Below are positions 23,806 through 64,000 of a DNA stretch of 64,000 bases, piece after piece. The DNA lies in assembly GCA_048772705.1 (NCBI GenBank), contig JBLWGC010000173.1, positions 186,001 to 250,000 of the forward strand, given 5' to 3'. The notes under the pieces are model-generated. The model saw only the letters and a list, made by a program, of their open reading frames with translations. It was not told where the DNA came from and did no database searches. Source of the DNA: Leidyana gryllorum EB-2025a. Lineage: Eukaryota; Protista; Apicomplexa. The position numbers were made by a program, and so were the translations under genes. Every line of letters starts with the position of its first letter. Position 1 is the stretch's first letter.

Positions 23806-25176
23806 TTATTGACGCTCCTTCTCTGGTGAAGGTGAGGCCTCATCTTCTGCTTCTGGCTCTGCTTCTTGTTTTTGTTGCTGCTGCTGTTGGTGGTGATTAG
23901 ACGACGACGAGGTCTCCTCATGCAGGTGGTGGCCGGAGTGAGTGTCATTATTAGCATTATTAGCGTGGGCCGTCTGAGTAGCAGGAGCCATCAACTCGCA
24001 ATGTATACTGTCGCCAATCTCGAAACCGTACGACACCAAATGTCGCCGGTCCAATGCACTCTGATATGAACTGCTCAGCACGCCCAACTCGGTCGTTCGG
24101 GCCACATCTAAATTGTGAAATGTGATCACTCACGCAAACAGACACTCACTGCGTCGGGTCTCGTGAACCACGAGCTTCAGCTTTAACTTGGCTGTTGGGG
24201 CCCGAGCTTCGGGCACCACATCCTTCACTAAGTTCACAACCTCTCGCAAACTGGAGTCCTTCCACGCGTATACATGAACTTCGTCTGGCGTCGGGTCATC
24301 GCCTTGGTCAGGGAGAGTAACAAATACTGGAAGGAGAAACGGACAGGTCCCTCGCCGGTTGACTGTCGGCACCGAGGTCCCACGTCGAGGGTTGTGGTGG
24401 ACTCCCTTTCGTTCGTCTCGGGCCCCCAAAGGCTTCCTCTGCGCCGGAGACACAACTCTGCGCAGTCGGCGGGCGGGGGGATCCATCATTGTCGACCCGG
24501 TAGTCGCTGGGCGCTTAATTCCCCGTCGACCGCTGCTGTTGTAAGGAGAAGGCGACTTTGGCATAGCTGGCCCTCCTCGACGATTGCCGTACGCCGCTGG
24601 GGAGGCCACAGGGGAATCTCGCGGCGACCTTCTTCGCTGCCGCTCGTCCACGGGCCCCGGCGAGTGGTACCGCCGCCGTAGCGGCGGAGACCGTTGCGGA
24701 CGGGGACGCGGCGAAACCATTCTCCGTCTGCCGCCTGGTCCTCCGCTCCTCGGCGGGGGCGACGCATTCCGTCGCCGCAACGTTTCAGCCGGCGGAGAAC
24801 GCCTTCTTCCGCCGCCATCCTCTCCGAGGGGAGGTGATTTGCCTCGACGGACACACGGCGAGTGACCTCTCCGCATTGCTGGAGACCTCATCCGAGGCGG
24901 TCTATCGTTCGGAAACCGCCGACCAGCCGGAGACATACCCCTACGGGGTGAATGTGGCTCGGGAGGGGGTCGTCTTCTCCTGTCATCACGCGTTGGTCGA
25001 AACGGTGAATCATTGTATTGCCGTCGGCTGCCTTCGAACGGAGAATCGGGTGGTGAGTAGTGACGATGTCGCGATGCACGCCCGTTCCAGTGATTGCTGT
25101 GAGGAGAGGAGTAACGTCTGTGGGGGGAGGGGGACCGACCGCCGCGTGGGGACGGGGTAGAGGAGGGGGAACGCAT
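23806..25176 (-). CDS. SAP18: SAP18 domain protein with a long Arg/Ser/Pro-rich N-terminal extension
   Basis: VNRRGTCPFLLPVF..EVHVYAWKDSSLREVVNLVKDV.PEAR, then ELGVL..D..L...GFEIGDSI in exon 2. Confidence 0.85.
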
Positions 25177-25223
25177 CTTCGGCAAAAAATTCGCCTTTAT
25201 GGCATACTAAGCATCGTCAATCC

Positions 25224-26279
25224 ATGGCTGACCATCGGGTCAAGACATTATTGTTGGGAGACTCTGCTGTCGGCAAAACATGCCTACTTTGCCGTATATC
25301 TGAAAACCAGTTTGACAAGAGACATATGCCCACCATTGGAATTGATTTCAGGTACTCTGCTTCAAGAACTCGAGTCACAAACGACCCCCCACAGAGTGAA
25401 AACATTTCCAGTGGACGGGAATATGGTGAAGCTACAGATTTGGGACACTGCCGGCCAAGAGCGGTTCCACTATATTACTCGTTGTAGGGCTGCAATATCT
25501 TATGGATCCAATGTACTATTTCCTGTTTGTCTAAATAGCATATTATCGCGGAGCGATGGCTATCATTCTCGTATTCGATGTATCTAATCGGCTTAGTTTC
25601 CAGAGTGAGCACTGTCATTGCTGTGTAATTAGAAGCGGTCGTACCCTATTGCCGCCTTGCACAATAATTGTTACTCGCGCTTGTGTGGCCAGCAGCACCT
25701 CAAACGGGGCCTTATCCTTGTCATCGTCCGTGTCATCGTCCGTGTTATCGTCGTGTTTCCTCAGATATTAATAAGTGGTTAGAACAAATTAACTTGCACG
25801 GGGGTGGGTGCCATGCCTCTGTCGGCCCGGACACTTGTGATAATTGCATTGCAGAGCAGCACGTGACCAAGTTGATTGTCGGAAACAAAAACGACATGCC
25901 GGACACACGGGTGAGTGGCCTAGCCCATCCCTCCTCGGCTGTGTTGGAATAAATCAGTTCGCCCCGTAATTGCGCGGCAGTCCCAATGACACATTCTGCT
26001 TTGCTCGCCCCGCTCGGATCGATCGTTAATCAATCTCAATTACAGCGGGAAGTCACATATGAAGAGGCCGAACTCATGGCAGCAACGCACGGGATCAGTT
26101 ACATGGAAACGAGTGCGCTCACAGGTCAAGGCGTGACGGCCGCATTCGAAGCTGTGGCCCGCGAAGTGCTCAAAGTTTTAGTCAAAGCGGGCAAGCGGCC
26201 CCCACGACAGGGATATAAAGTTCAATTGTCCATCAATGATGTATTCGAAATGACCCCCAGAAAGTGGAAATGCTGCTGA
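25224..26279 (+). CDS. Rab GTPase, Rab8/Sec4/Rab1-like (multi-exon)
   Basis: GDSAVGKT, PTIGIDF, LQIWDTAGQERF, YYRGAM, GNKND, ETSA, C-terminal CC prenylation motif. Confidence 0.93.
25720..25757. repeat. ~12-bp tandem repeat (tgtcatcgtccg, about 3 copies) in a Rab intron
   Basis: Seen directly. Confidence 0.75.
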
Positions 26280-28093: not shown

Positions 28094-29428
28094 TAGTCAA
28101 TTTTTTCATGTATCGCTTTGCGCACAATTGTTTGACGTGACTTTCGTACATTTGGCCAAAAGCCATATGCTACTTTGATTTCAAATGGGTCTCTTGATGA
28201 CCGCTGGCGCAACATCACTTCAAAGGGAACTTCGAGAGAAGCGAAGCCCTTAGCCCGGAAGTCTGTCCATCCATCATGTAGTCATCTCCACGCCAACTTT
28301 TCCGTAACCCAGTCACCACCCACCATACATTTCTAGTCTGCTTGCAAACTAGCCTACACACACGTGTGCAACACGAATCGCAATCCGGTTGCTGCAGACA
28401 AACTTCCCAGTAGACATAACATCACGACATTGTATTCTCTAAAAACCTTTTTTTAATATCATAGTTCGATTCGTCACTCCATCGCTTATCACCATCTCGC
28501 CTTTTACTAGATGGTGCAGTGGAGGGACACATACGACTATTGTCTTTTTGGAGGGTCTCTGACCTGACATAGCCTCCGACTACGGAGAGGGCGGCGGCAT
28601 CATTCGAGCAGAAGACGGGAGATTCCAGCACCCCCCACTCGAGCCAAGACCAGACGCTACTATCTGGCCCTGATGTCTGATTGTTATGAGGACTACTAAA
28701 GGAAGGAACTATGAGAAACCGGAACTGAGGGTGCAAGTGTTCGTTATTGTTTGGAGTATAATAAAAGGGTGTAACATTCCCGCGTTCGATTAATCTTGGA
28801 GGTCGAGACGAGTCCGGTGTCTTTTGCGTGATGGCGTTCTGGGGTTTCTCCCCTTGTAGGTGAAGGGTCGGCCTATCAGAATGATTTGTTTGGGAGTTTG
28901 TGAGGATTTCGGGGTGTATGTTTCCTCTATTAATGTTTGTTCACGCGAAAGAGGTCCAGTGCAGTGTAATCATATTTATACACCGTTCCCGCGTCCGGTG
29001 TTGACGGGAGCGAGGGAATCCTGGTCTACTGCAATGTATGAGTACTCATCTGTGACTTGTATAGTCATTTCCATTGGATTCGTGATTGGTACTGGTCCAC
29101 TCCGCAGCGTTTGAATTCTTTCTAAGAATTCCTCAATCTCCTATGGGAGTGTTCGATGAGATGGGAGATCGAATTTGTTCGGTACTTCGGGATCCCCCTG
29201 CGGCCCAGTCCGAATGATCGATTCTTCCTCTATCTCCGTTGTTTTCTTTCCAGTGGCGTCTGTTTGGGTAGTATAAAGGACCGTCTCTTGTGAAGTGTCA
29301 ATGATCTCCTCTAACGGATCTATTCTGTTCTGTTGGGAGCCGCGAGTACTGGCTGTATCTATTGCCTCCCTACGGTCAGTCCTTCTTCGATGAAGTCTGA
29401 CCTTATGATCATTGGCATTGGTCCATTC

Positions 29429-35685: not shown

Positions 35686-36636
35686 ATGACGCCTCAGGCG
35701 ATCCCCGATGACTTTTGCACTCCTCCGCCTCCAGGTGGTCTGGAATACCCGAGTCAAGAGTTCCTCAGCGCTCCAGAGTACGACGATGATGCGTCAGGTG
35801 ATGAGAAGGGCTCCAAACGGGAGAAAGAGCGACGGAGTTCTCTACCGGTGCCGTTACATCCGCGAGACGGTAATGAGGAAAAAGGGAGTCGGCCTGAGTT
35901 CGAAGTCCGGGTCCAAAATGCGTCGCGTTTACAAAGCGTCCAGGAGCCCCTGTCGGCTGCCCTCACAGCCAAAGGATATTTGTCAGAGCCCTTACCGTCC
36001 TTCAATTTAGACCCGAGTGCAGTGGAGTCGTCAGCATCGCGGGGAGGGGCGGATCTGTCAAGTTTGGCCGCACCATCGTCAATGCACAGTGCCATGCGTA
36101 GTGTGTCGAGCGATTCGCGTAAGCATCATCGGCCGTCAGGTGGGGTACAGGGCTCGGGGGCAGGAGAGGAGGGGACTCCTCGGCCCGAAGGGTTGGTGGG
36201 AGGCGAGAGCGAGGGTAGCACGGCTCTGGGGCGAACCATTTCCGATCGTTTCCAGTGGGGTCCGGACTTTATAGATGTTAGCAGTCCTCTGGCCAGCATG
36301 GTGCCTTGGATCATCAATTTTCCACAGAAAGCGGCAGGAGATGAGGGGAGGGGAAAGGGCAAAGATAAACGACAGCGAGCGCGGAGCCAAGATGCTGTGC
36401 AGATGCCTCCGCAGAGAATATTTGACCAGTTGGCATTGGAGTCTCGAAGTGGGCTGGACAGTGTGCAACGGATGTTGAGATATTATCGCGCGACTGAAGC
36501 TCTGCCAGAAGGGCGACGTAAGGTTGAGGCGCGAAAGGATATATTGCGGAGATTACATCTACTATATGAGCCCTTGCAGAACATTTTGAGCCAAATGGGT
36601 CAACTTGAAAGAGAGTTACATCACACTACAGTCTGA
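35686..36636 (+). CDS. Hypothetical protein, disordered with a C-terminal helical/coiled-coil segment
   Basis: 316-aa ATG-initiated ORF. Confidence 0.55.
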   Translation: MTPQAIPDDFCTPPPPGGLEYPSQEFLSAPEYDDDASGDEKGSKREKERRSSLPVPLHPRDGNEEKGSRPEFEVRVQNASRLQSVQEPLSAALTAKGYLSEPLPSFNLDPSAVESSASRGGADLSSLAAPSSMHSAMRSVSSDSRKHHRPSGGVQGSGAGEEGTPRPEGLVGGESEGSTALGRTISDRFQWGPDFIDVSSPLASMVPWIINFPQKAAGDEGRGKGKDKRQRARSQDAVQMPPQRIFDQLALESRSGLDSVQRMLRYYRATEALPEGRRKVEARKDILRRLHLLYEPLQNILSQMGQLERELHHTTV

Positions 36637-36744
36637 TCGGCGAACTGTTTATATTTGTGAGCGGCGGGGGGTGCCGCAAACTCGGGCACAGCACCCAGCT
36701 GCAGGCAATAAGGGCTGTGGTTCAGATGGAAAATTGAGCAACGG

Positions 36745-37323
36745 TCACACCTGACAACATGAGGGATCCAGATCTGACAGTCTAGTGCTGTTAGGCAAAG
36801 CAGCGGCGTCAGTAGTCTCGGTCTTCATGCATCGACAGTAGCTGGAAGGACTTGTGTTGGCAAGGGGTTGAACAATCTCGCTGTCACCTGGTGGTGGCGA
36901 GGCTGAGGCATGGGTGTTGCTCTTTGACGAGAGACGCGCGCCGAAGAGAGCATATCCGCATGCGAGGCCGGCCATACAAACCAGGAAGATTCCAACATTG
37001 AATGTCATAACCACCAACATCAACGCATAGTCCCAAGAGTAGCTACAAAAAGCTGATAGAGCGCGAATTGCACTGGCGACATATATGTTCTTCCCTTGAA
37101 TTAATCCCGATCTCTCAATTTTGCCTCGTAATACTTTCAAATAAATGGCCAGAATCCCCGCACAAAATATCGCAATGAGACTCCCAGCATAAGCACCACG
37201 AGTCTTTGTTGCCCAGCCAGAGAACAATATCGTCGCCTGGTAACTGTTCACAAACGACATTTGCATCCCCATCATCATACTATGATCGTGATCACCTTCT
37301 GCATGGTCGTGATCTCCGTCCAT
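36745..37323 (-). CDS. Ctr-family high-affinity copper transporter
   Basis: His/Met-rich N-terminus (HDHSMMMGMQMSF), ILFSGW, DYALMLVVMTFN (MxxxM), GLACG, C-terminal CC. Confidence 0.95.
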   Translation of the reverse strand: MDGDHDHAEGDHDHSMMMGMQMSFVNSYQATILFSGWATKTRGAYAGSLIAIFCAGILAIYLKVLRGKIERSGLIQGKNIYVASAIRALSAFCSYSWDYALMLVVMTFNVGIFLVCMAGLACGYALFGARLSSKSNTHASASPPPGDSEIVQPLANTSPSSYCRCMKTETTDAAALPNSTRLSDLDPSCCQV

Positions 37324-37348
37324 TCTCCAAACAGATTTTTACCAGAAA

Positions 37349-37939
37349 ATGTCCTCACCGCCAATCTGCTCCCAACAAAGCACCAAATCCGAAACTTGGA
37401 TTGGATTCTACGGTTTTGTTTCCTGGATTGCCTCCTTTGTTGTCTACGGTAAGGAACTGCCCATCCACGAGAGAAAAGGAGGAGAGTTGCCCGCAACGGT
37501 AACTGGTCTTCAACCCAAAATTGAATATCACCACACACAGGTACCTACTTAATATGGGCATTTGCGGCCGACTCCTGGCTGGAGCGGATGGGCATAACTC
37601 ACTATCCTAACAAGTATTGGGCTCCCACTATTCCGCTATTCTTCATGGTTTGCACATTTGCCTATGCTTTCATGGTCCACTTCTCCTCCCTTCTCCAAGT
37701 ACCAGACATACGGTCACCGGATTATATAGTAGGTGAGAGGCCCTTCTCTACAATGTACTAAGTGGTCCATACAATACACAATCATCATCGCAGACCCATT
37801 CACTCGATATCACAAACCACGAGGGGAAAGTGCCGAAGGCGCTCTACCTAGACCTGCCGACATACCCCTCAATGTGGTCAACCAGTTTCTCTACAGAACC
37901 AACACCCCGGCGGCGGGAGGAAGGCCCAGTCTGGACTAG
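37349..37939 (+). CDS. PIGP: GPI-GlcNAc transferase subunit P (PIG-P/Gpi19), 3 exons
   Basis: Spliced translation FYGFVSWIASFVVY-GTYLIWAFAADSWLERMGITHYPNKYWAPTIP...DPF...DIPLNVVNQFLY; middle exon is absent from the ORF track. Confidence 0.9.
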
Positions 37940-37967
37940 ATAGCTAAGCTAACCAAACCCAAACCTC

Positions 37968-40261
37968 TCAATCACCCTCTTGGGTGTCAGACTCCGAGTC
38001 AGACGAGCCCGCGTCGATGTTACCTGATTTCAAAACAGTCTCCAAGTCTGCACACACGTGCGACTTACCAATCATCTGCTGAATAAGCGACGGCTGGTCG
38101 TCCAAGGCCAAGTCGTCAGGATGCACAAACACCTTCCGATTCACCTCGGATTCGAGCTTGGCTGGAGGGCAAGGGGATGAATCCGCCACCTAATCAATCA
38201 CAAAAACTTACCGGTGAACTCGGCCATGGCCGCAGTGTCGGCACCAAAGTAGGAATCACAATGACCGCGGATGTGCAGTTTCCGGAGTCCGGGCTCGCGA
38301 ACTGGGAACTGTACTTCTAACTCAAACTCCCGCTCGGGCGACTTCGAGGTCTGGAAATTCAACAACTGACCGTTGCGGGTATCAGTCACAAAGAAGAACC
38401 ACTCTTCGTGCTTAGTCTTGGGATAATACGGCGCATGAATCTCCCCTTGCGCTTCATCCGCCTGCAGCAGTGACAGGTTTGAGGTGGCACTCAAGTGCGT
38501 TGCTTCCCGACTGACCTTGAGATGTTTCCGCTCACATTTGATGGTGCAGGTGGCAATGTCGCCTGCGCAGATCTCTGCCTCGTCAGGAGTGGCCACGGAG
38601 ACTGTGAGATGCATATCGGGAACTTGATGGAGCAGCTCCTCGAGGTCGTGCTGAGCGAAGTTCGATTTGAACCAACGGAAGAGAAGGCAGTGAAACTTAC
38701 GATCTGGTCTGGAGTGAAACCAGCCAAGGCCTTCGCTTTGTGGTCGAGGGCTCCCTTGAGATATCCCCGAAGTAACGCCATCTTGTTCTGGATGCTGTTG
38801 GGAGGCACTTCAGTCTGAATGGTTTTGCAGTTCTGCTCGGTAACATGAGGCAATTGTAGCAGTGGACTCTTGTCCACGTCAAGAGCCTGCAGGAGAGCCC
38901 TGCGGAGTCCCAGGACGGCATTGATGGTGGTGTGCCAGTTGTTGAGCACAGCAATATCAATCATGCTCTTTGTCATCGGAATAGCTTGCCTACATTATCA
39001 GGTTCGGGTGTGAAAGCGGGGAGAGAGAGAGTCATGGGCTTACTGCAAGATGGTGTTGAGATCGGCTTTGAGATTGGCGGAGAGATGGTCTGTTTGCCTC
39101 TGCATATGTGCGAAGATGAGCATCATATTCTTCCTGACGCTTGCCAGCTTGGGCGCTCCAAGCACTTTGGGGTCGGGCATCTTGATTTTATCAGTCAACA
39201 CCGCCAAATCCGCTTCATCAGTGGGCCGCATTGGCATTGAGCGACACTCTGAACTAGAAGCAATCAGCACCACAAGCTGATGAGGCATAATATTCTCCTT
39301 CATGAATCCAGCAAAGTAGCGGACAGTGTCAACCTTCAGTCCACTGGGCGAATATTCGCGGATCCTTTGATAGTAAGAAATGAACAACGCCGGGACAACG
39401 ATGAGAAGGAATATACAAAACACCGCCATTATGAAGATTTGAGAATTCTCTCCGATCAAGAAGCTCGGGAGACCAATCCCTACTTTCATCATACCCGGGC
39501 CGTCAGGATTGCCATACTTCTCAAAGTTCTTGCGAGCATTCTGCAGGCAAAGGGGTAATTGGGTGTCCACAGGGTGAATGGGAGCGGCAACGGGGGGCAA
39601 TGAAGGGGCAATGAAGGGACAATGAAGAGGCAACGGGGGGCAATGAAGGGGCAATGAATTTGAATCGAATCAGAGGCAGAATTCATATCAGAAGGATACC
39701 CACCTCATCGGTGAGCGTATGGTACGCTTTGGCAATGAGTAAGAATTTGGCTGCCGAGGCGGGGTCATTCTTGTTCTTGTCTGGATGGTACTTGAGAGAC
39801 ATCGTTCTGAAGGCTTTCTTGATCTGTTTCTCGGTGGCCTCCATAGATATCTGGAGAACGTCGTACGGATCAAAGGAGGCCATTGTCTTCATTGCAGTGA
39901 GTGATGTGAAGCATAAGTACAGGAACAGGGCCCATCCACAGATGAGGGTGAGACCGAGAGGCAGGTTGGCCTTCACTCTCGCCCACAGCGGCGTCTCACG
40001 TGCCATCCTGTCTCGTTTGGCGGCGCACAGGGAACAGCCACATTTATGGAGCTTCGCGCCTGACGGGGCACAGACAGGTCTGCTGGAGTGGCCACTGGTG
40101 CCTGGAACATCAGCCTTGAGGACTCGATTGCGCACAAACCACACAGTGGTTGGTGCCAAAGTTACGAAGAGCGCTGTGGAGGCAAAGTAGTAGAAGGCTC
40201 CATCATCATACTCTAAGACAGACTGTTTATCCTCCTTGGTGAAAGTCTCCTTGAACGACAT
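37968..40261 (-). CDS. SEC63: Translocon subunit Sec63 (J domain plus Sec63 domain), multi-exon
   Basis: LEYDDGAFYYF, FDPYDVLQI, KYHPDKN, EKYGNPDGP, IGLPSF, LLQLPH, HAPYYP..KHEEW, CDSYFGAD. Confidence 0.95.
39591..39658. repeat. ~11-bp tandem repeat (ggggcaatgaa) in a Sec63 intron
   Basis: Seen directly, about 6 imperfect copies. Confidence 0.85.
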
Positions 40262-40431
40262 CTAGGAGGACAACACCACCAAAAGAAAACGTCCCAAACT
40301 AACTACGTATGGGTGACTTTAGCACTTGGGGCTTTAGCAAGCGTCAATGACCAGCTGAGGGTGTTGAGTCCCACATTGACCGTTTTCTGGGCTTTTTGAG
40401 ATGTCTGTGGGTGCTGCATGTAGGGCAGGCA

Positions 40432-42548
40432 ATGCATCGAATAAAAGGGGTCAAGGACAAAGTTCTCCATTCTGTACATGCGCCCCGCCCTCGCTTCCTC
40501 GGAAGAAGAAGGACATCAGTTCCCGAGAAACCCGCAGAGCAGTCCGAGGAGAATGTCTTGGCTAACGAATGGCTCAAGATTGATTCCACTACTTCGGCCT
40601 CCACGGCCTCGGCATTGCAGCGGAAAAAAACTCACTCAGTCGACCTTCGTCGCCGCAGTCAATGGCTGACTGCTACAGAGTTAGAGCGGCTCGCCGACAG
40701 TCTCAGCATGGAGGATCTCTTGGCTGAGGTGCCTCGCGACTGTGACCCCGTGACATGTGATCTCATGGAGTCCATAGTGCAGACCCACGAAGATCTGCAG
40801 CTGGCACGCACTCAGCTCAATCTCTTGTGCACCCCCAACCCTACGCTCATGAGCATCTTGGATTCCTCCTCCACACGCCTTACAGTCTCCATAATCTCGC
40901 TATTGCTAATTATAGGCAATACGTACTGGACTCATTACCCCTCGGCCACGCTAGCGCTCACGGTTGCCTTAGTGCTATACATAAATGTTCGCCCGCCAGC
41001 CACCGAGTTCTTGCCCTTAGTACTAGAAGGTATAGAGAAGGGTGTTGAACACGTTGAAAATGCTACGGGCAAGCTGACGACTATTCTCGCCGCCCACGAA
41101 GGCAAAAGTCCGGCTCGCCTCATCTCCTCACCCACTCTGGTTGAGAAAGAAGAACTCGTTGTGCAGGCCAGTCCCAGGAGACTACATCTCACCAACCTCT
41201 TCTTCACCAACTCGGGAGCATTCCATCTGCACGAGGAGGCCACCATAGCCGATTATTTAGAGCTGATAGCCTCCATCGAAGCTCCGGGCCGCCCTCCCAA
41301 AATGGACACACGGGATTGGCCACTCAGATCAACTTACTTCCGATTCAGCATGTCCGACTCGTCCAAAAGTGAGCTTGTTGAACGCTTGACCGCGTGCCTC
41401 ACAGGTGAGTGAGCAAGACAGCGGTGTGTTCTCGGACATAATCAACTACGTTTCACAGAACGAGGGGTTGCCAAAGAAGACTATTCCAAACGACGCTGCG
41501 TCGAGTTCCTCGATCTCATGCGGTCTGTTGCTATCTACTATAATCCCGCTGCCCTCTTGTTCAATTCCTACCTGGTGGAGCCCAGGCATCAACGAGTACA
41601 GGCCTTCTACGACTTTGAGACCAGCCTGTTCAAAGGTCGGCTCATATGTCGTGCGGCCGGGTTCGACCACATCCCAACCTCAGCCAAGACAGTCGCGCTC
41701 TTTTTCCATGGCAAACGCAGAGTTATGCAATTTGTGTGCCAAGGAGTGCTCAAAGAGGATGTGTGTGCCCGGTCACTGCTAACCGGACAAATCTTCCGAA
41801 AGCCCTTGAAGCTCCCCCCCGCACTCCTCGTCCGGATGGCTATGATGTTTATGCGAAGTTTCAATAGTGTACAAGCCGACGACATCACCTCAACAACACA
41901 TCCCTACTTTATATCTCCTTTCATCACCTCCTGCCAGACTGTGCATGTTGCCGATCCCAAAAAGGGTCAAACGGCTCCTGACATTTCTCAACCAACGGAT
42001 ATAATAGAAGACTGTACAGCTCTGGGAGGCGATCTGGACGGGCCAATCGGATTGGATGGACGGCTGCGTCGCAAGTTCTTCAGCAATCTGGAGAACCTGA
42101 AGTAAGTTGGAGCTCTTGGTCCGCTTGATTTGATTGCGTTTACCAGCCGAACGATCTTACGCAAAAATCTCGTCTATACGTTCGAGTCCTACCAGGTAAG
42201 CCAAATTGCGCGAGGGTTTTGTAGTGTCGGTGCGAGACACACCACACACACCCACGTGCGCGCAGCACCTGACACAGATCAATAATGATTGCTATGCAGC
42301 ACCAATTCAGGTTTGACAACTTCCAGTTCGACCTGGGAGTACGAACAATGGACATTAATAATTATCTGAATGACCAGCCCGTGGAAGTTAGCTGTTTCTT
42401 AGACGACAAGCTTGGAAAGCGTTTCTTCGGCGTCGATCGGAAGAGGGCTGGCAATGAATTGGGGGACGGAGACGTTCCCACTAATTATCTATGGAGGCTG
42501 GAGATTTTCAGTCGCCGGGCAGTTGAGAATCAAGCGGCGATGAGCTGA
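40432..42548 (+). CDS. DUF1769-like domain protein with an N-terminal TM hairpin (multi-exon)
   Basis: FETSLFKGRL, FFHGKRRVMQFVCQG, GQIFRKPLKLPP, PYFISPF, RRKFF, YTFE, YLNDQP. Confidence 0.65.
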
Positions 42549-43843
42549 TGAACGGTGGAGATCCCAGCCGAAATGTGTTTGACCGCTCCATTGACCAGCA
42601 AGCAGAGCAGCCAGAGAGTCAGGGCATACATGAGGCTATGCTGACCGTTGGCAGTAGGTTGCTTGCCGAAGACTGGTTGCCATACCAAGGGAAAGTGGAA
42701 AAGGAACCCGAGAAAGTTAGTCAGGCCGGGGGCGACCCGATGGACGAATCGATTCTCAAACAGCCTGAATAAGAGACCTTTCATGCACTGGGGCCTAACG
42801 ACGCCGTCCCACATCCATCTAAGCCTCTCACGCACTTCCTTCCGCTCGGCGCTTTCGCTTTTATCAACGACCTTAACGAAAACATCCTGCTCATCACCAT
42901 CGCTTGCTGGAGGAACGGCGGTCAGCGGTAGAGGGGCAGCAATTGGTGTCATGGCGGATAGATAAAAGCCATAGATGGTGGTGACGAGGAGTGGGGAAAT
43001 ACCGACCGTTCGCCAGAGCCACTGAGCATTCCAATTGTCCTTGTACCTTCGGGGGCCATGTGATTGGATCAACAGATATATGAAGAATGTGACGTCGGAT
43101 AGATGACGACAGAGCACTCGTCTGTAGTCAAAAATATAGGGTCTGACGACATTGCCGTCCAGTGTGAAGGGAGCGTTGATCAAGGCTCGGGCGAGCCAGA
43201 ATCCAAATGTGTACTGCAGAGCTCGAGGCAGGGGATGGAAAGACCACCCGCTGAACTCTTCAGCATAGCTATGGAGAGCACCGCAAAGCAACAAACATGT
43301 TGTTACCAGACCCACTCCAGTCCATACTAATCGACTTGTATACTTTCCAAGCCATGCGACCACTGGACCTCGTACTAAAGGGTGTACCAACCACAGCCAC
43401 ACAAGTTGGCACACGAACCAGTGGACCGGGTTTGGATTCCAAACTATGCGATTCTTGTCGAATCGTTCAAGAAATGGTAATGTGGCAGTGAAGACGTATT
43501 TTAGTAGATACCGACCCGCTCCTGCTCTGATGGGGAAAATACGGTAGGCGATGTATGCAGTGGCCCATGTCAGCAGTACAATCTTGATACACCGATGTCG
43601 TACGAAGGTCCAGTAGAATCGCCAGAAAGAGACAAAGCCTCCCGATGCACTCGCAGTCCGAATACTGAGACTCAACTCCGTAGTTAGACCGGTCAAAATG
43701 AAGAAGATACCCGAATCGCCATTACGAACTAATCGATCATGAGCTTCTGAGGTCTTGAGACAATGAAAGGCTATAACCCAGGCATGGGCCATCAGCCGAA
43801 GTCCATCCAGGCATGGCACTCGCGGGGCAGCAACTGTGGACAT
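42530..43843 (-). CDS. Acyltransferase family 3 (OafA-like) integral membrane O-acyltransferase
   Basis: LDGLRLMAHAWVIAFH, GIFFILTG, RHRCIKI, HWFV, about 10 TM segments; intronless. Confidence 0.8.
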   Translation of the reverse strand: MSTVAAPRVPCLDGLRLMAHAWVIAFHCLKTSEAHDRLVRNGDSGIFFILTGLTTELSLSIRTASASGGFVSFWRFYWTFVRHRCIKIVLLTWATAYIAYRIFPIRAGAGRYLLKYVFTATLPFLERFDKNRIVWNPNPVHWFVCQLVWLWLVHPLVRGPVVAWLGKYTSRLVWTGVGLVTTCLLLCGALHSYAEEFSGWSFHPLPRALQYTFGFWLARALINAPFTLDGNVVRPYIFDYRRVLCRHLSDVTFFIYLLIQSHGPRRYKDNWNAQWLWRTVGISPLLVTTIYGFYLSAMTPIAAPLPLTAVPPASDGDEQDVFVKVVDKSESAERKEVRERLRWMWDGVVRPQCMKGLLFRLFENRFVHRVAPGLTNFLGFLFHFPLVWQPVFGKQPTANGQHSLMYALTLWLLCLLVNGAVKHISAGISTVHQLIAA

Positions 43844-43859
43844 CTACCAAAAAAAGCAC

Positions 43860-46800
43860 ATGACCTCCCCAACGACTTTCCCCTCCTTGGAGTTACTGGC
43901 TGTTCGCAATGTGCAGCTGGAGACCTATATGTCTCGACGGTTACTGCCCAATATAGATCCCACTCACTCGCCGTTGACCAAGAAAGCCTTATGGCACGTT
44001 CCTGTGATCCGTATATTCGGTCCCTCCATAATTATACGGGTGTCGACTGACCCCAATCGGGCCATTTTGACTTCACCAGGAGGCCCTGGAGAATCCAAGC
44101 CGCCCTTTGAGCGCGGCCCGGAGGTCTTAGTCCATGTCCACTCTGTGCTGCCGTACTTTTATATATCGGTGCCGTCCACACTCCTCTCAAGACTGCCATC
44201 ACACTTGTGTGCGAGGTGCGATGGCGATGCCTTTCTTGATGTGGGTCGCTCTGCTGCTACTGCGAATGCTAATCGAGGCGTATCAGCGGCACCGTGTTGT
44301 CAATTCTGTCTCGATATCGTACATCGTCTCGAGCAGCGCTTGTCGACCGAAGACCGATATCTGCGAAGCAATCGAAAAATGCTGGATCAACCTCAGCAAT
44401 ACGCGTTGATATATGACGTCCAGCTGGTCGCTCGGAAGAGCGTATACGGCTTCCAATCTGCCCCCTCGCTGTTCATCAAAATCACCTGTGTCCGCCCTCA
44501 AGACAATGCAATCGTGGGGAGCATTGTCAAGTTTGGCAATATCTTCAACGCACCGGCTCAGCCTTTCGAGTTACATATACCATATCCGGTGCAGTTTATG
44601 GCCGACTATGATGTCTCGGGACCTGACTTCTTCTTCTTTGTTCCAGAAGATGTCAAAGTACGCAATCCGTACGAGAAGCAGTCTCACCTCCCCAAGCTTG
44701 TCGAGTTTGACTTGATGGCCTCCCAATTTCTGTCTCAACAGGCGGACTCGGGGACCAGACGACAGCCGAGAAAAGACGTCGTGGAATCCATCGTCGTTAT
44801 GGACGACGGCAAAATTGACTTTCCGGACGACAACATGATGTCAGATGACGAGCGGACCCCTTGGCCTCAACTCTTTGAGCAACGCTTTCCGTGGGATTTC
44901 TCGACTGTGGGGGCGCCGGCACCCACAGTCTCACTCCTGAACCTGTGGGTTGTAGGTATCTGGTCACTCTCACACCTCCACTTTGCTCTCAAATAGGCTG
45001 AACGAGAACGCCGTATTCGATATCAAATCTCGGGCCGAACCCCGCTCAAGGATCCCGACACATACCTGAGCACAAAGTTTGACACTGAAAAGTAAGAATC
45101 TCAACGCAAGCAACACTCACAATGTGCACAGATCAAACGTTGTCTTGGCTTCTCAAATTCCGCAATATGCGATCGACCAAGTCGAAGAGCTCCAAGAGTT
45201 TGTACGCCGGTCAGAGGCAGTGAAGAAGGACGAGCCAATCCTAGACAAGTTTGAACTGTCTCGTCTAAAGAAAGAGAAAGGGGCCATGTCGTCCCAACCC
45301 TTGACAGAAGAAGCTCTTCGCAGGAAGCGCAGAGCCTCTGAGACTGGTGATCGCACACAAGCCACAGACGACAATAAGGGTCCCACTAAACTACCTCGTC
45401 GGGAAGCTCGCCTGGCCGGTTATGTTGTGTGCCCTTTCTGGAGCAATGCAGAGGACCTGGAAATGAATACGATTTACCGTCACATACCCGATTGGTCTTT
45501 GACTAGGCGGGTAGGGCCTCCGGGACCCCCCATTTCGATCGCATCGTGTTGTCCGGGATGTACTCTGGATACTTGCGGCGAGACTGGCGTGCGAACTCTC
45601 ACCTTTGCTTCGGAGAGTCTCGCTGTCCGTAACCCGCACCTCTGCCTGCACGACTGCGCTTTCTTTCAAAAAGATCCCTTGGACAACTTGCTGGGTCAAC
45701 GGACGCCTGTTGAAGGCCCCCACCGTACCTTTGTCTTCGCGCGGAGACCTCCGGACCTTCATGTTGTTATCGCCGAAGCCAAGGAGGCTAAACTCAAGCT
45801 CGAGGAGGCGCAACGTAACAAAGTCGCCACTGTTGTGAAACCCATGCTGGATTCCTATGGCCGATTAGTCTACAGCGCTGCGCCCGAGACGGCTGCGAAC
45901 ACCCAGCAGAGTCATCCCCCACCTCAGACCCAATCGTCGGTCTATGATTCTCCCACCATCAGGATAATGGGAGAGAGTGATGAGCCTATCTCTATCTCAC
46001 TAGCGGACGAACTCAGTGCCCTCAAGTCGGCGAGGTCAAGTCGGTCCTCATCCACGCCGTCGTCAGTAACAGCTCACTCTCCTCCCCCGCAAAGCGCTCG
46101 AAAAGGCTGGTGGAAAGAAAGCGCGGGCACCATGATGTCGAAGGTGAAGGCCATAGTAGCTGGACACCTCCCTCCTCATCTGCGCGGCGTCTTGGGCCGC
46201 ATATTATTCATGGAATGTTTATTGGACTTAAGTGTCGGTGACGCTCGCAAGGCCGGCAGTGCAGTCAATGCTCTGAGAAGCATTGGACAGCTGTATCGAG
46301 AGAAGGGTATTGCAGAAGCGGACGCTATCTCTGCTGTCGTCCTTGGCTGGGTCGAGGCGACCATCGTCAAGACTGAGGCACCAGACAAGATACACTACGG
46401 CGTGCTCTTCGTGGACGCAGGCGAGGCTGATAATGCCGGAGTCCTGGTAGCTGACCTCTTCGGCACTCGTCCTGCCCGTGGAGACCCTCTTTTCACTGAA
46501 GCATTCGCCTCAGAAAACGAGCTACTCCTACGCGTGTGCCACCTGATCGACCAGATCGATCCAATAATGCTCGCAGCATGGGACATTCGTCAGGCATCTG
46601 TTGGCTATTTCATGAAACGACTGGCAGTTGTTATGGGAACTCCTGATGCTATGGGATGGCTGTCGCGGATCCGCAAAGAAGGTGTACCCGGTCCCCCTAT
46701 AGCGACTTCCGGTCAATTGGCCCCGACTGCCACCGTCGGGGCCACAGGGGAGCAGAAACGGGCTATGCAAGCTCTCACATCCAGTACGTATCATTCATAG

Positions 46801-61518: not shown

Positions 61519-62346
61519 GCCCGATTCTCATCATTGGGTGTCCAATCCCACAATCTTCTCAAAGGCAGTTTCTCATCATCAGTCCTCGTGAGAAGCGGTT
61601 CAACAGCTGCATAGACCTTTCGCTCAATCTCTGCAATACTTCCGCTGGCATCAATCACAACCCATCGAGCCACATCGCCAGTTGCTTCACGGAGCTCATG
61701 TTGAAGCGCTTCAAACGTGTCTTGGACTTTGTTTTGAATCTCTGCCTTTTCGTATACCTCTGCGAACCCATCACCATTTTATCAACCGTTGAGCACAAAC
61801 GTTACCTCCTCCACCCTCTGTAGTTTCAGAACGGTGCAGCATCTGTTGGGGATCACCCTTTAGCTGAATGATAATGTCCGGCGCTGTCAGCCCGTCATCC
61901 GGCTTCGCACACCAGTCTTTGTCGAAACCCTGGACCACCTCTGTGTTGACTTATCAGGAGGCAAGCCGGGCTCACCAGTGCAGCACGCGAATAAACAACA
62001 CCACTTATCGCGAATCGATCGCACACCACGTGTGTTCCGCTGAGCAGCAGATTCCGGATTCGTTCATTCCATTCCCAGCGGTTGGCAGAGAAGAGCAGAT
62101 GGGCGGCATGAGTATCACAACCCCCTTCTTGCTTCAAATATGCATCCAATTGACGTCCGATGACAGTAGTTCGGTCTACAGATTCGTGCCGAATCACACC
62201 ACACACATGTTCAATTTACCAGGAAATCTAATATGTTTGACTAGATTTTGCTGATCCTCAAGCTTTGCAGCTAAGATTTTGCTTTGAGTGGTCTTGCCAC
62301 ATCGGTCAATACCCTCAAAAAGGATGAATAGCCCTCTCTTGGTCAT
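61497..62346 (-). CDS. TMPK: Thymidylate (dTMP) kinase, eukaryotic type (multi-exon)
   Basis: MTKRGLFILFEGIDRCGKTTQ, IRFP|DRTTVIG, HLLFSANRWE, VVCDRF..SGVVYS, GLTAPD, EVYEK, WVVIDAS; stop TGA at 61499-61497. Confidence 0.95.
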
Positions 62347-62381
62347 AACGGGTCACTTTTTTTTTTCTGTCATTGTGCAGG

Positions 62382-63956
62382 ATGGAAGGCCGGTTGGTGG
62401 AAGAGGGATTGACATTCGATGATGTGCTCATGGTTCCGGCCTACTCGGAAGTGCTTCCGAGCGACGCGGACTTGAGCACTCATTTGACAGCCCAAATCCA
62501 CCTGAAAGCCCCAATCCTGTCTGCGGCCATGGATACCGTCACTGAACACGCGATGGCAATCGCTATCGCCAAAGAAGGAGGTCTCGGTTTCATTCACAAG
62601 AACATGAGCATTGCAGAGCAAGCCGCAGAAGTACGGAAAGTGAAGAGGTACGAGGCTGGAGTCGTTTCGGACCCCGTTCGCATTCCTCCGACTATGATGC
62701 TTGGTGACATTAGGAAGCTAGCAGAGCACCACGGGTTCTCGAGCTTCCCTGTGGTCGACCCCTCTACCCGCAAGGTGTTGGGAATCGTCACAGGCCGAGA
62801 CATTAAGTACGAAAGCAATGATACTTTACGGGCTGAAGACATCATGACTGGCGGCGACCGTTTGGTCACAGTGAAACGTTCTTCAACTCGTCCGTCTACT
62901 GCGGCGGCTTTGACCAGCGGGCGTCGCGAGTCTGCTCCCGAAGTAACGCACAATGATTCCCCCATGTCGCCCACCATCGCCCTGAGCCGTGGCGAGGTGA
63001 AGGCCATCATGGCACGCAATCGCGTGGAGAAGATTGTAGTGGTGGATGAAGAGAACCGATTGGAGGGTTTGATTACCCACCAAGATTTCATTAAGGCTGA
63101 GAGTGAGCCCAATGCTTGTCGCGACGCAGAAGGTTGCCTCCGCGTGGGTGCCGCCGTAGGCTGTGGCCCGGACACGTTGGAGCGTGTTTCTGCTTTGGTG
63201 GAGGCGCGAGTGGATGTGATTGTTGTGGACAGCTCGCATGGGCATTCCCAGGGCGTTTTGAATACCGTCCGGAAAGTGCGTCAAGCATTCCCAGATCTGC
63301 CGATCATTGGAGGCAACGTGTGCACAGCCGAAGGAGCTCGTGCTTTGGTGGAAGCTGGTGCTGACGGCGTGAAGGTCGGGATCGGCCCGGGCTCAATTTG
63401 CACAACTCGCGTGGTGACGGGTTGCGGTTATCCGCAGCTGAGCGCGATAGTTAATGCCCGAACGGGTGTTGAAGGGCAATTCGGAAGACGTATCCCTATA
63501 ATAGCGGATGGAGGTCTACGGTACAGTGGTGACATTGCAAAGGCTTTGGCAGCCGGTGCGGACTGCGTGATGATGGGGTCCATGCTGGCCGGGACTGAGG
63601 AAGCTCCTGGCGTTACTGAGCTCTTTGAAGGCCGGGCTTACAAGAGCTACCGTGGTATGGGTTCGGCGGCTGCAATGGCCAAAGGATCTGCGGACCGGTA
63701 CTTCCAGAGTGGCAAGAAGAAGTTCGTCCCAGAAGGAGTTGAGGGGCGTGTAGCGTACAAGGGTCTGGTAAAAGAGACCGTCAGTATGCAGTTGGGAGGA
63801 GTTCGGGCTTGTATGGGTCTGACTGGTTGCAGGACGATCGAAGACTTGCATGAAAAAGTCAAGTTCGTGAAAGTAAGCACTAATGGTGTGCTGGAGTCGC
63901 ACCCTCACAACATTATTATGACCAAGGAGCCCCCTAATTACAGTCGCCGCACTTGA
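62382..63956 (+). CDS. guaB: Inosine-5'-monophosphate dehydrogenase, bacterial type with CBS domains
   Basis: [75 protein letters not shown]; intronless. Confidence 0.97.
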
Positions 63957-64000
63957 GCCGTTTTTGGTTGATAGAAAATTTATTATATCTAAACAATGGC

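Follow-up and report, generated by a model that had tools for sequence, protein, structure and literature searches.

Poly(dA:dT) Tracts in Ultra-Short Head-to-Head Spacers of a Gregarine Genome: Candidate Shared Bidirectional Promoters

Introduction

Four pairs of divergent genes in a gregarine apicomplexan have their start codons only 16 to 47 bp apart, and each of the four spacers carries a homopolymeric A/T tract. This architecture is real, extends over the whole genome and is conserved in relatives; its general kind is known from other organisms and is newly seen here in a gregarine. The explanation that we favour, with about even confidence, is that a poly(dA:dT) tract of 5–10 bp makes each spacer the core of a bidirectional promoter serving both genes and giving rise to very short leaders. 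An AG dinucleotide that precedes the start codons of these genes, and that had suggested a splice acceptor, is a coincidence of the region and not a processing signal. Gregarines are a large early-branching group next to Cryptosporidium, and we know of no publication on gregarine promoters or transcript ends.

Genome, Start Set and Controls

The assembly comprises 15.5 Mb in 237 contigs. The window, that is, the whole 64,000-nt stretch of DNA analysed here, is G000:C173:186001-250000. The genome has a GC content of about 52% and is densely packed with genes that contain short introns. The apparent placement of the organism among the gregarine apicomplexans agrees with its best IMP dehydrogenase (IMPDH) matches, a Logan contig (61% identity) and a 'Gregarina sp.' transcriptome protein (62%). 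A search for sequencing runs with window positions 36500-46400 listed no run, and no contig was retrieved by exact-protein look-ups with IMPDH, Ctr, acyl-CoA synthetase and the EukProt Gregarina IMPDH.

The statistics on start codons were obtained from 260 kb of one contig (C173), together with pattern counts and 30 small loci. For each of the non-redundant starts (n = 100), the longest ORF was taken, with a minimum of 150 aa, and its first ATG was used if no more than 35 codons upstream were open; the set is ORF-based and includes some false starts. Gene calling by codon usage was too weak at 52% GC and missed the acyltransferase, and longest-ORF starts were used instead. Automatic intron calling, based on GTRAG donors and open frames, gave results too noisy for an acceptor matrix; the comparison of acceptors is based on the hand-checked introns of the Rab gene only.

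For the genome-wide counts, a reversed-pattern control was used; since ATG outnumbers GTA 1.6-fold, this control is biased, and the resulting ratios are rough. These counts are also inflated because of two repeats: a dispersed one with CATCGCATTTTTTTGTTCTCAACATCGTATG, present in at least 25 copies on many contigs (e.g., G000:C5:38344-38374, C13:20968-20998, and C81:64675-64705), and a tandem satellite containing CATGTTTAACACTTTTTTGCCACATG (C23/C25/C26/C31). At the start of C173 there is, in addition, a direct duplication of about 2.67 kb (G000:C173:466-5180, L002) with two identical ORF pairs of 245 and 405 aa.

The Head-to-Head Spacers

The initial annotation of this DNA had described four head-to-head spacers, each with a homopolymer run that, on the strand where it reads as T, is followed by an AG 0–3 nt before the ATG. 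On re-reading, the coordinates and sequences of the spacers of 16, 25, 35, and 47 bp are exactly as it gave them (Table 1), an A or T run of at least five nucleotides is present in each, and as plain sequence the AGs lie where they had been placed. The T-rich stretch and TAG reported ahead of the Sec63 ATG are also present.

Table 1. Head-to-head spacers and flanking genes in the window (positions within the window)
Feature	Position	Strand	Description
Spacer acyltransferase/REV3	43844..43859	.	16 bp; cat-CTACCAAAAAAAGCAC-ATG; A7 tract 43849-43855
Acyltransferase-like membrane protein, 437 aa	42530..43843	-	ATG 43843; in-frame TAG directly before ATG
REV3 (DNA polymerase zeta), first open stretch	43860..44996	+	ATG 43860; REV3_N from residue 13
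Spacer Ctr/PIG-P	37324..37348	.	25 bp; cat-TCTCCAAACAGATTTTTACCAGAAA-ATG; T5 tract 37336-37340
Ctr copper transporter, 192 aa	36745..37323	-	Pfam Ctr from residue 22, E 5e-20
PIG-P-like exon 1	37349..37448	+	then GTAAGG donor at 37449
Spacer TMPK/IMPDH	62347..62381	.	35 bp; cat-AACGGGTCAC-T10-CTGTCATTGTGCAGG-ATG; T10 tract 62357-62366
Thymidylate kinase (TMPK) exon 1	62206..62346	-	ATG 62346; Pfam Thymidylate_kin from residue 10
IMP dehydrogenase, 524 aa, single exon	62382..63956	+	Pfam IMPDH residues 9-509, E 5e-155
Spacer SAP18/Rab	25177..25223	.	47 bp; A6 tract 25184-25189
SAP18-domain protein	24130..25176	-	SAP18 domain residues 272-341
Rab GTPase exon 1	25224..25351	+	Ras domain from residue 7; intron 1 GTACTC to CACAG
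Sec63-like first exon	39683..40261	-	DnaJ domain residues 131-186; T-rich stretch + TAG before ATG

Spacers of this size would be ordinary if the true start codons were located further downstream, an alternative that the initial annotation had itself raised. It does not apply, since most of the eight flanking genes have real start codons: six of them are backed by domain positions and orthologue alignments, while those of PIG-P and SAP18 are only likely. The acyltransferase-like protein, which gave no Pfam match, aligns from M1 with an orthologue on another Logan contig (L024), with a conserved block from about residue 8. The first open stretch of REV3 also contains POL3_N, and its N-terminus aligns with the REV3 of a relative. 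PIG-P exon 1 alone gave no Pfam match; its identity is that of the initial annotation, and its start codon is likely to be correct, judging from our own reading of a first hydrophobic segment. The SAP18 start codon is plausible and the least certain of the eight. About 270 aa precede the SAP18 domain, forming an N-terminal extension that is rich in Arg, Ser, and Pro and resembles an RS domain.

Elsewhere on C173, further ultra-short head-to-head spacers of 11, 45, and 64 bp are found. The 11-bp spacer separates an RWD/IMPACT-like gene (domain from residue 5) from a zinc-knuckle gene, and the 45-bp spacer has ERCC1 (domain from residue 18) on one side. Divergent genes with validated start codons are thus arranged around one short common spacer.

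The Poly(dA:dT) Tract at Gene Starts

An A or T run of at least five nucleotides occurs within positions -60 to -1 of 34 of the 100 starts, compared with 5.7% of random 60-mers. This represents an approximately six-fold enrichment directly upstream of start codons, where TTTTT and AAAAA are the most enriched 5-mers. Such a tract is present in each of the contig's seven head-to-head spacers that do not exceed 64 bp. The run usually ends 0–17 nt from the ATG, with a median of about 10–13 nt in either orientation; it lies tight beside the ATG, and no spread over the upstream 100–200 nt was seen. Over the whole genome, the pattern CAT-N(0-20)-T7+-N(0-20)-ATG has 346 raw matches against 56 for the reversed control, part of them contributed by the dispersed repeat. 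A long ORF starts from one or both flanking ATGs in 19 of the 21 unique CAT..T7+..ATG loci that were fetched.

The initial annotation had spoken of a T run. The homopolymer run itself is real, but it is strand-symmetric and not specific for T. T runs and A runs each precede 18 starts and both peak in the -20 to -1 bin; among starts without a close divergent partner the numbers are 12 and 11, respectively. Genome-wide, T6..ATG has 2280 matches and A6..ATG has 2100, and the one-sided loci among the fetched CAT..T7+..ATG sites are divided into five with the ORF on the T-sense side and five on the A-sense side. No significant directionality was detected when TTTTTG was compared with CAAAAA (11 vs. 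6). The tract is therefore both enriched at gene starts and symmetric, and since the polypyrimidine tract used in splicing must be T on the sense strand, it is not a tract of that type. Only about one third of the starts carry it, which means that it cannot be the sole start signal. No second motif was detected beside the homopolymer run upstream of starts, and E2F-like sites (TTTSSCGC) show no enrichment ahead of starts on C173.

Conservation in Relatives

Two Logan contigs of other organisms, L023 and L024, were used for comparison. The TMPK/IMPDH and REV3/acyltransferase pairs stay head-to-head in these relatives, at protein identities of 61% for IMPDH and 64–67% for the acyltransferase, and the gene order acyl-CoA synthetase, TMPK, IMPDH is the same in L023 as in the window. 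In L023 the TMPK/IMPDH spacer (L023:5956-6000) measures 45 bp and has A7 and A6 on the sense strand of IMPDH, opposite to the T10 of the window; no AG is found near the TMPK ATG of L023. The REV3/acyltransferase spacer of L024 measures 21 bp and has a T8 tract, oriented as in the window, with an AG 1 nt before the ATG. The gene caller had taken a downstream ATG for the L024 acyltransferase, and the alignment gives the true start. The tract is hence retained in the orthologous spacers of two out of two relatives and flipped in one (TMPK/IMPDH). As judged from these alignments, the tract and the tight arrangement are conserved, while the orientation and the AG are not consistently so. A search for homologues of Ctr found none, and the comparison covers the TMPK/IMPDH and REV3/acyltransferase pairs. 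Next to the A7 tract of the L023 TMPK/IMPDH spacer there is an E2F-like site, TTTCGCGCG.

AG Dinucleotides and the Splicing Explanations

Two of the three explanations put forward by the initial annotation, namely 5′-UTR introns and spliced-leader trans-splicing, take the T run and the AG as an acceptor. The premise that both share fails on four counts: the AG is not enriched, it is not replicated, the tract is A as often as T, and the confirmed acceptors of the Rab gene look different. An AG ends 0–3 nt before the ATG in 27 of the 100 ORF-defined starts (260 kb of C173), and it does so before 27% of 2,145 internal ATGs used as a control (29% of the 931 in-frame and 25% of the 1,214 out-of-frame ones); as more than a chance motif, the T run with AG is not sustained. 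No AG excess appears at any position from 0 to 29 upstream of the 100 starts, and the start context is weak (A 34% and G 25% at -3). In the cleanest subset, the tract-bearing starts, 8 of 28 follow the AG rule. For T-run starts, the rule is followed by four of six inside the window vs. one of ten on the rest of the contig. By our own tally it is also followed by about 10 of the 41 non-repeat CAT..T6..ATG sites listed genome-wide, and it has no replication outside the window as a general rule. Of the 12 fetched loci whose T-sense side holds a long ORF, five have the AG by eye, which is not significant. Since the AG is at chance level in all wider sets, its presence in four spacers out of four is attributed to a local fluctuation together with a post-hoc choice of strand. 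The acceptor-like AG should not be taken as evidence for trans-splicing or for widespread 5′-UTR introns.

There might still be 5′-UTR introns in some of the named genes, with a pre-mRNA that begins inside the neighbour and splices onto the AG just ahead of the ATG. Introns are plentiful in this genome (five within 1 kb in the Rab gene), and at three of the five acceptor-like sites, pyrimidines lead up to a final CAG or TAG. The acyltransferase has a perfect GTGAGT on its own strand 124 nt upstream of the ATG, defining an intron of about 124 nt that would end in T7-GGTAG, and its L024 orthologue combines tract and AG as described above. However, GTGAGT occurs 0.36 times per kb and strand, and isolated matches are therefore expected. 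A GTRAG donor is absent within 400 nt upstream of SAP18, IMPDH, PIG-P, and the L024 acyltransferase. The five introns of Rab (about 44–140 nt, with donors that are GTRAG-like or weaker, such as GTACTC and GTAGGG) provide the confirmed acceptors of the window; these consist of mixed C/T tracts and YAG (CAG or TAG), and none has a homopolymer T run. As acceptor contexts, the AAG of SAP18 and the acyltransferase site, with its GG at -4/-5, are poor. The strand flip of the TMPK/IMPDH tract in the orthologue and the chance level of the AG, both overall and in tract-bearing starts, also argue against these introns. Nothing requires them, and we regard them as improbable.

Trans-splicing of a spliced leader (SL) to the AG would be, to our knowledge, the first case in an apicomplexan. 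Dinoflagellates and perkinsids, which are sister alveolate lineages, are known to use the process, and through it a gene with hardly any room upstream could still receive a capped leader. An SL system places an acceptor upstream of most coding regions, but gene starts in general have no acceptor signature here: the AG frequency is that of internal ATGs, and a T run is on the sense strand at only 16–18% of the starts, with an A run as often. The search for an SL RNA gene that the initial annotation had proposed was carried out for leaders of the DinoSL/Perkinsus type, and no SL gene of this type was found in the 15.5-Mb assembly. The 21-nt consensus has one match in 15.5 Mb, which contains three mismatches, is single-copy and is followed by TGAAGT with no GT donor; one match of this quality is close to the chance expectation. 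The only Rfam hit in the window is a U5 snRNA. In Cryptosporidium there is no spliced leader (10.1101/2025.01.17.633476), and no paper was found that reports one in gregarines. On this evidence, trans-splicing is very improbable.

Transcription Starts and 5′ Leaders

The third explanation of the initial annotation, a minimal bidirectional AT-rich initiator or promoter, fits everything that was measured and is favoured over the two splicing explanations; its near-leaderless part is our inference. Poly(dA:dT) tracts are well known to exclude nucleosomes. The rigid tract in the spacer would keep the spot nucleosome-free, RNA polymerase II would initiate in both directions at or next to it, and the resulting 5′ leaders would be very short, up to roughly 25 nt. 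In that case, the remainder of each core promoter would fall within the opening codons of the gene on the other side. Very short leaders find weak, indirect support in the upstream ATGs, whose depletion is confined to positions -10 to -1 and which are at background frequency from -11 to -60 (a comparison of low power, with about 15 expected per 10-nt bin), and in the closeness of the tract end to the ATG (0–17 nt). A uORF of three codons between the A6 tract and the Rab ATG speaks against this explanation.

A less probable alternative, which we consider rather unlikely, keeps the tract as a nucleosome-excluding shared promoter and moves the transcription starts tens to hundreds of nucleotides into the coding region of the neighbour, giving overlapping, unspliced 5′ UTRs. 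Cryptosporidium, the closest relative studied in depth, favours this variant: strand-specific RNA-seq of C. parvum has revealed UTRs that extensively overlap the genes beside them, regardless of strand, and polycistrons that are not trans-spliced, with no spliced leader (10.1101/2025.01.17.633476). The same-strand gaps between stop and ATG on C173 are often below 100 bp (2, 21, 31, 36, 39, 42, and others); some of them are exon–exon gaps within one gene, while the 39 bp between IMPDH and GMP synthase is a true gap between genes. Therefore, overlap of transcripts or co-transcription is unavoidable somewhere, and the 39-bp gap in particular calls for an internal promoter in the upstream gene or for co-transcription. 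Moreover, some tracts abut the ATG at distance 0, so that at least those must be transcribed. Against the overlapping leaders stands the background level of upstream ATGs from -11 to -60, with seven ATGs within 150 nt of the SAP18 start and, for the acyltransferase, one at -18, so that a long leader would contain many false starts. The position of the tract, tight beside the ATG instead of spread through the upstream 100–200 nt, also disagrees with them.

The upstream ATG of the acyltransferase has a particular origin. The start codon of REV3 is part of a CATG palindrome (window 43844-43861, minus strand), and an acyltransferase transcript that began inside REV3 would therefore carry an upstream ATG at -18. 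This ATG opens a uORF of five codons whose stop is the TAG abutting the main ATG. An analogous upstream ATG of the acyltransferase is found in L024 (L024:3601-3628).

The shared tract promoter with short leaders can also be formulated for the genome as a whole. A large share of the genes, including head-to-head pairs on the order of at least 100, would be fired bidirectionally from single tracts of 5–10 bp, with leaders of about 0–25 nt. Such genes would follow a mode of initiation and translation like that of Giardia and the microsporidia, undescribed in Apicomplexa. We hold this broader proposal tentatively, at somewhat below even confidence. If the tract model holds, it offers a simple rule to find true start codons and to annotate gregarine genomes, and it would show that an apicomplexan under extreme compaction has arrived where the microsporidia and Giardia did.

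Comparison with Known Systems

Two parallels come from outside the Apicomplexa. In the microsporidian Encephalitozoon cuniculi, 5′ UTRs are shorter than 7 nt, and the S16/L13 genes are head-to-head around a 35-bp spacer with one shared A/T signal (PMC2803860). The gregarine resembles it in having an A/T-rich signal within about 20 nt of the ATG, a head-to-head pair about 35 bp apart on one signal (TMPK/IMPDH), almost no Kozak bias, and a very compact genome in which overlap of transcripts is unavoidable. On the other hand, the signal of E. cuniculi is AAATTT-like and followed by a CCC/GGG motif, whereas that of the gregarine is a plain homopolymer run; the leader lengths were measured in E. 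cuniculi and are deduced for the gregarine. Giardia lamblia has AT-rich bidirectional promoters and leaders of 3–25 nt (PMC1885649). In both organisms an AT-rich element, degenerate in Giardia, adjoins the ATG; the action in both directions and the short leaders of Giardia would have their counterparts in the gregarine. Giardia differs in having two AT-rich patches about 30 bp apart and almost no introns, and it belongs to a distant lineage; the gregarine genome, at about 52% GC, contains many introns, and each spacer has only one short tract.

Within the Apicomplexa, Plasmodium and Cryptosporidium have an excess of long poly dA.dT tracts beside their ORFs (PMC4194402). In Plasmodium, poly dA is found within 10–20 bp of the ORF; poly dT occupies a nucleosome-depleted region, immediately ahead of the predicted start sites, as in Dictyostelium (PMC4194402). 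The genomes of that analysis, which covered organisms other than gregarines, are AT-rich and, in Plasmodium, have long intergenic regions; the gregarine tract, in contrast, belongs to a GC-balanced genome and lies between start codons only 11–64 bp apart. C. parvum is equally short of intergenic space, and no spliced leader has been found in it either. Its transcript overlap is known from RNA data, while the gregarine architecture is known here from the DNA sequence alone.

Additional Observations in the Window

A U5 spliceosomal snRNA gene is present at window positions 28463-28570 on the plus strand (Rfam RF00020, 48 bits, full length).

The IMPDH (guaB) of the window is of proteobacterial type, 57–58% identical to the enzymes of Photobacterium and similar bacteria. 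GMP synthase (guaA) follows on the same strand after 39 bp (63957-63995), the pair running from window 62382-64000 into L021:1-1621. This GMP synthase matches bacterial structures (5tw7 and 1gpm; 540–553 bits) better than those of Plasmodium (411) and human (256), and the relative keeps the order guaB-guaA (L023:6001-8514). The same order is that of the bacterial guaBA operon. Judging by these similarities, IMPDH and GMP synthase look like the product of a horizontal transfer of the whole operon, its genes kept as neighbours.
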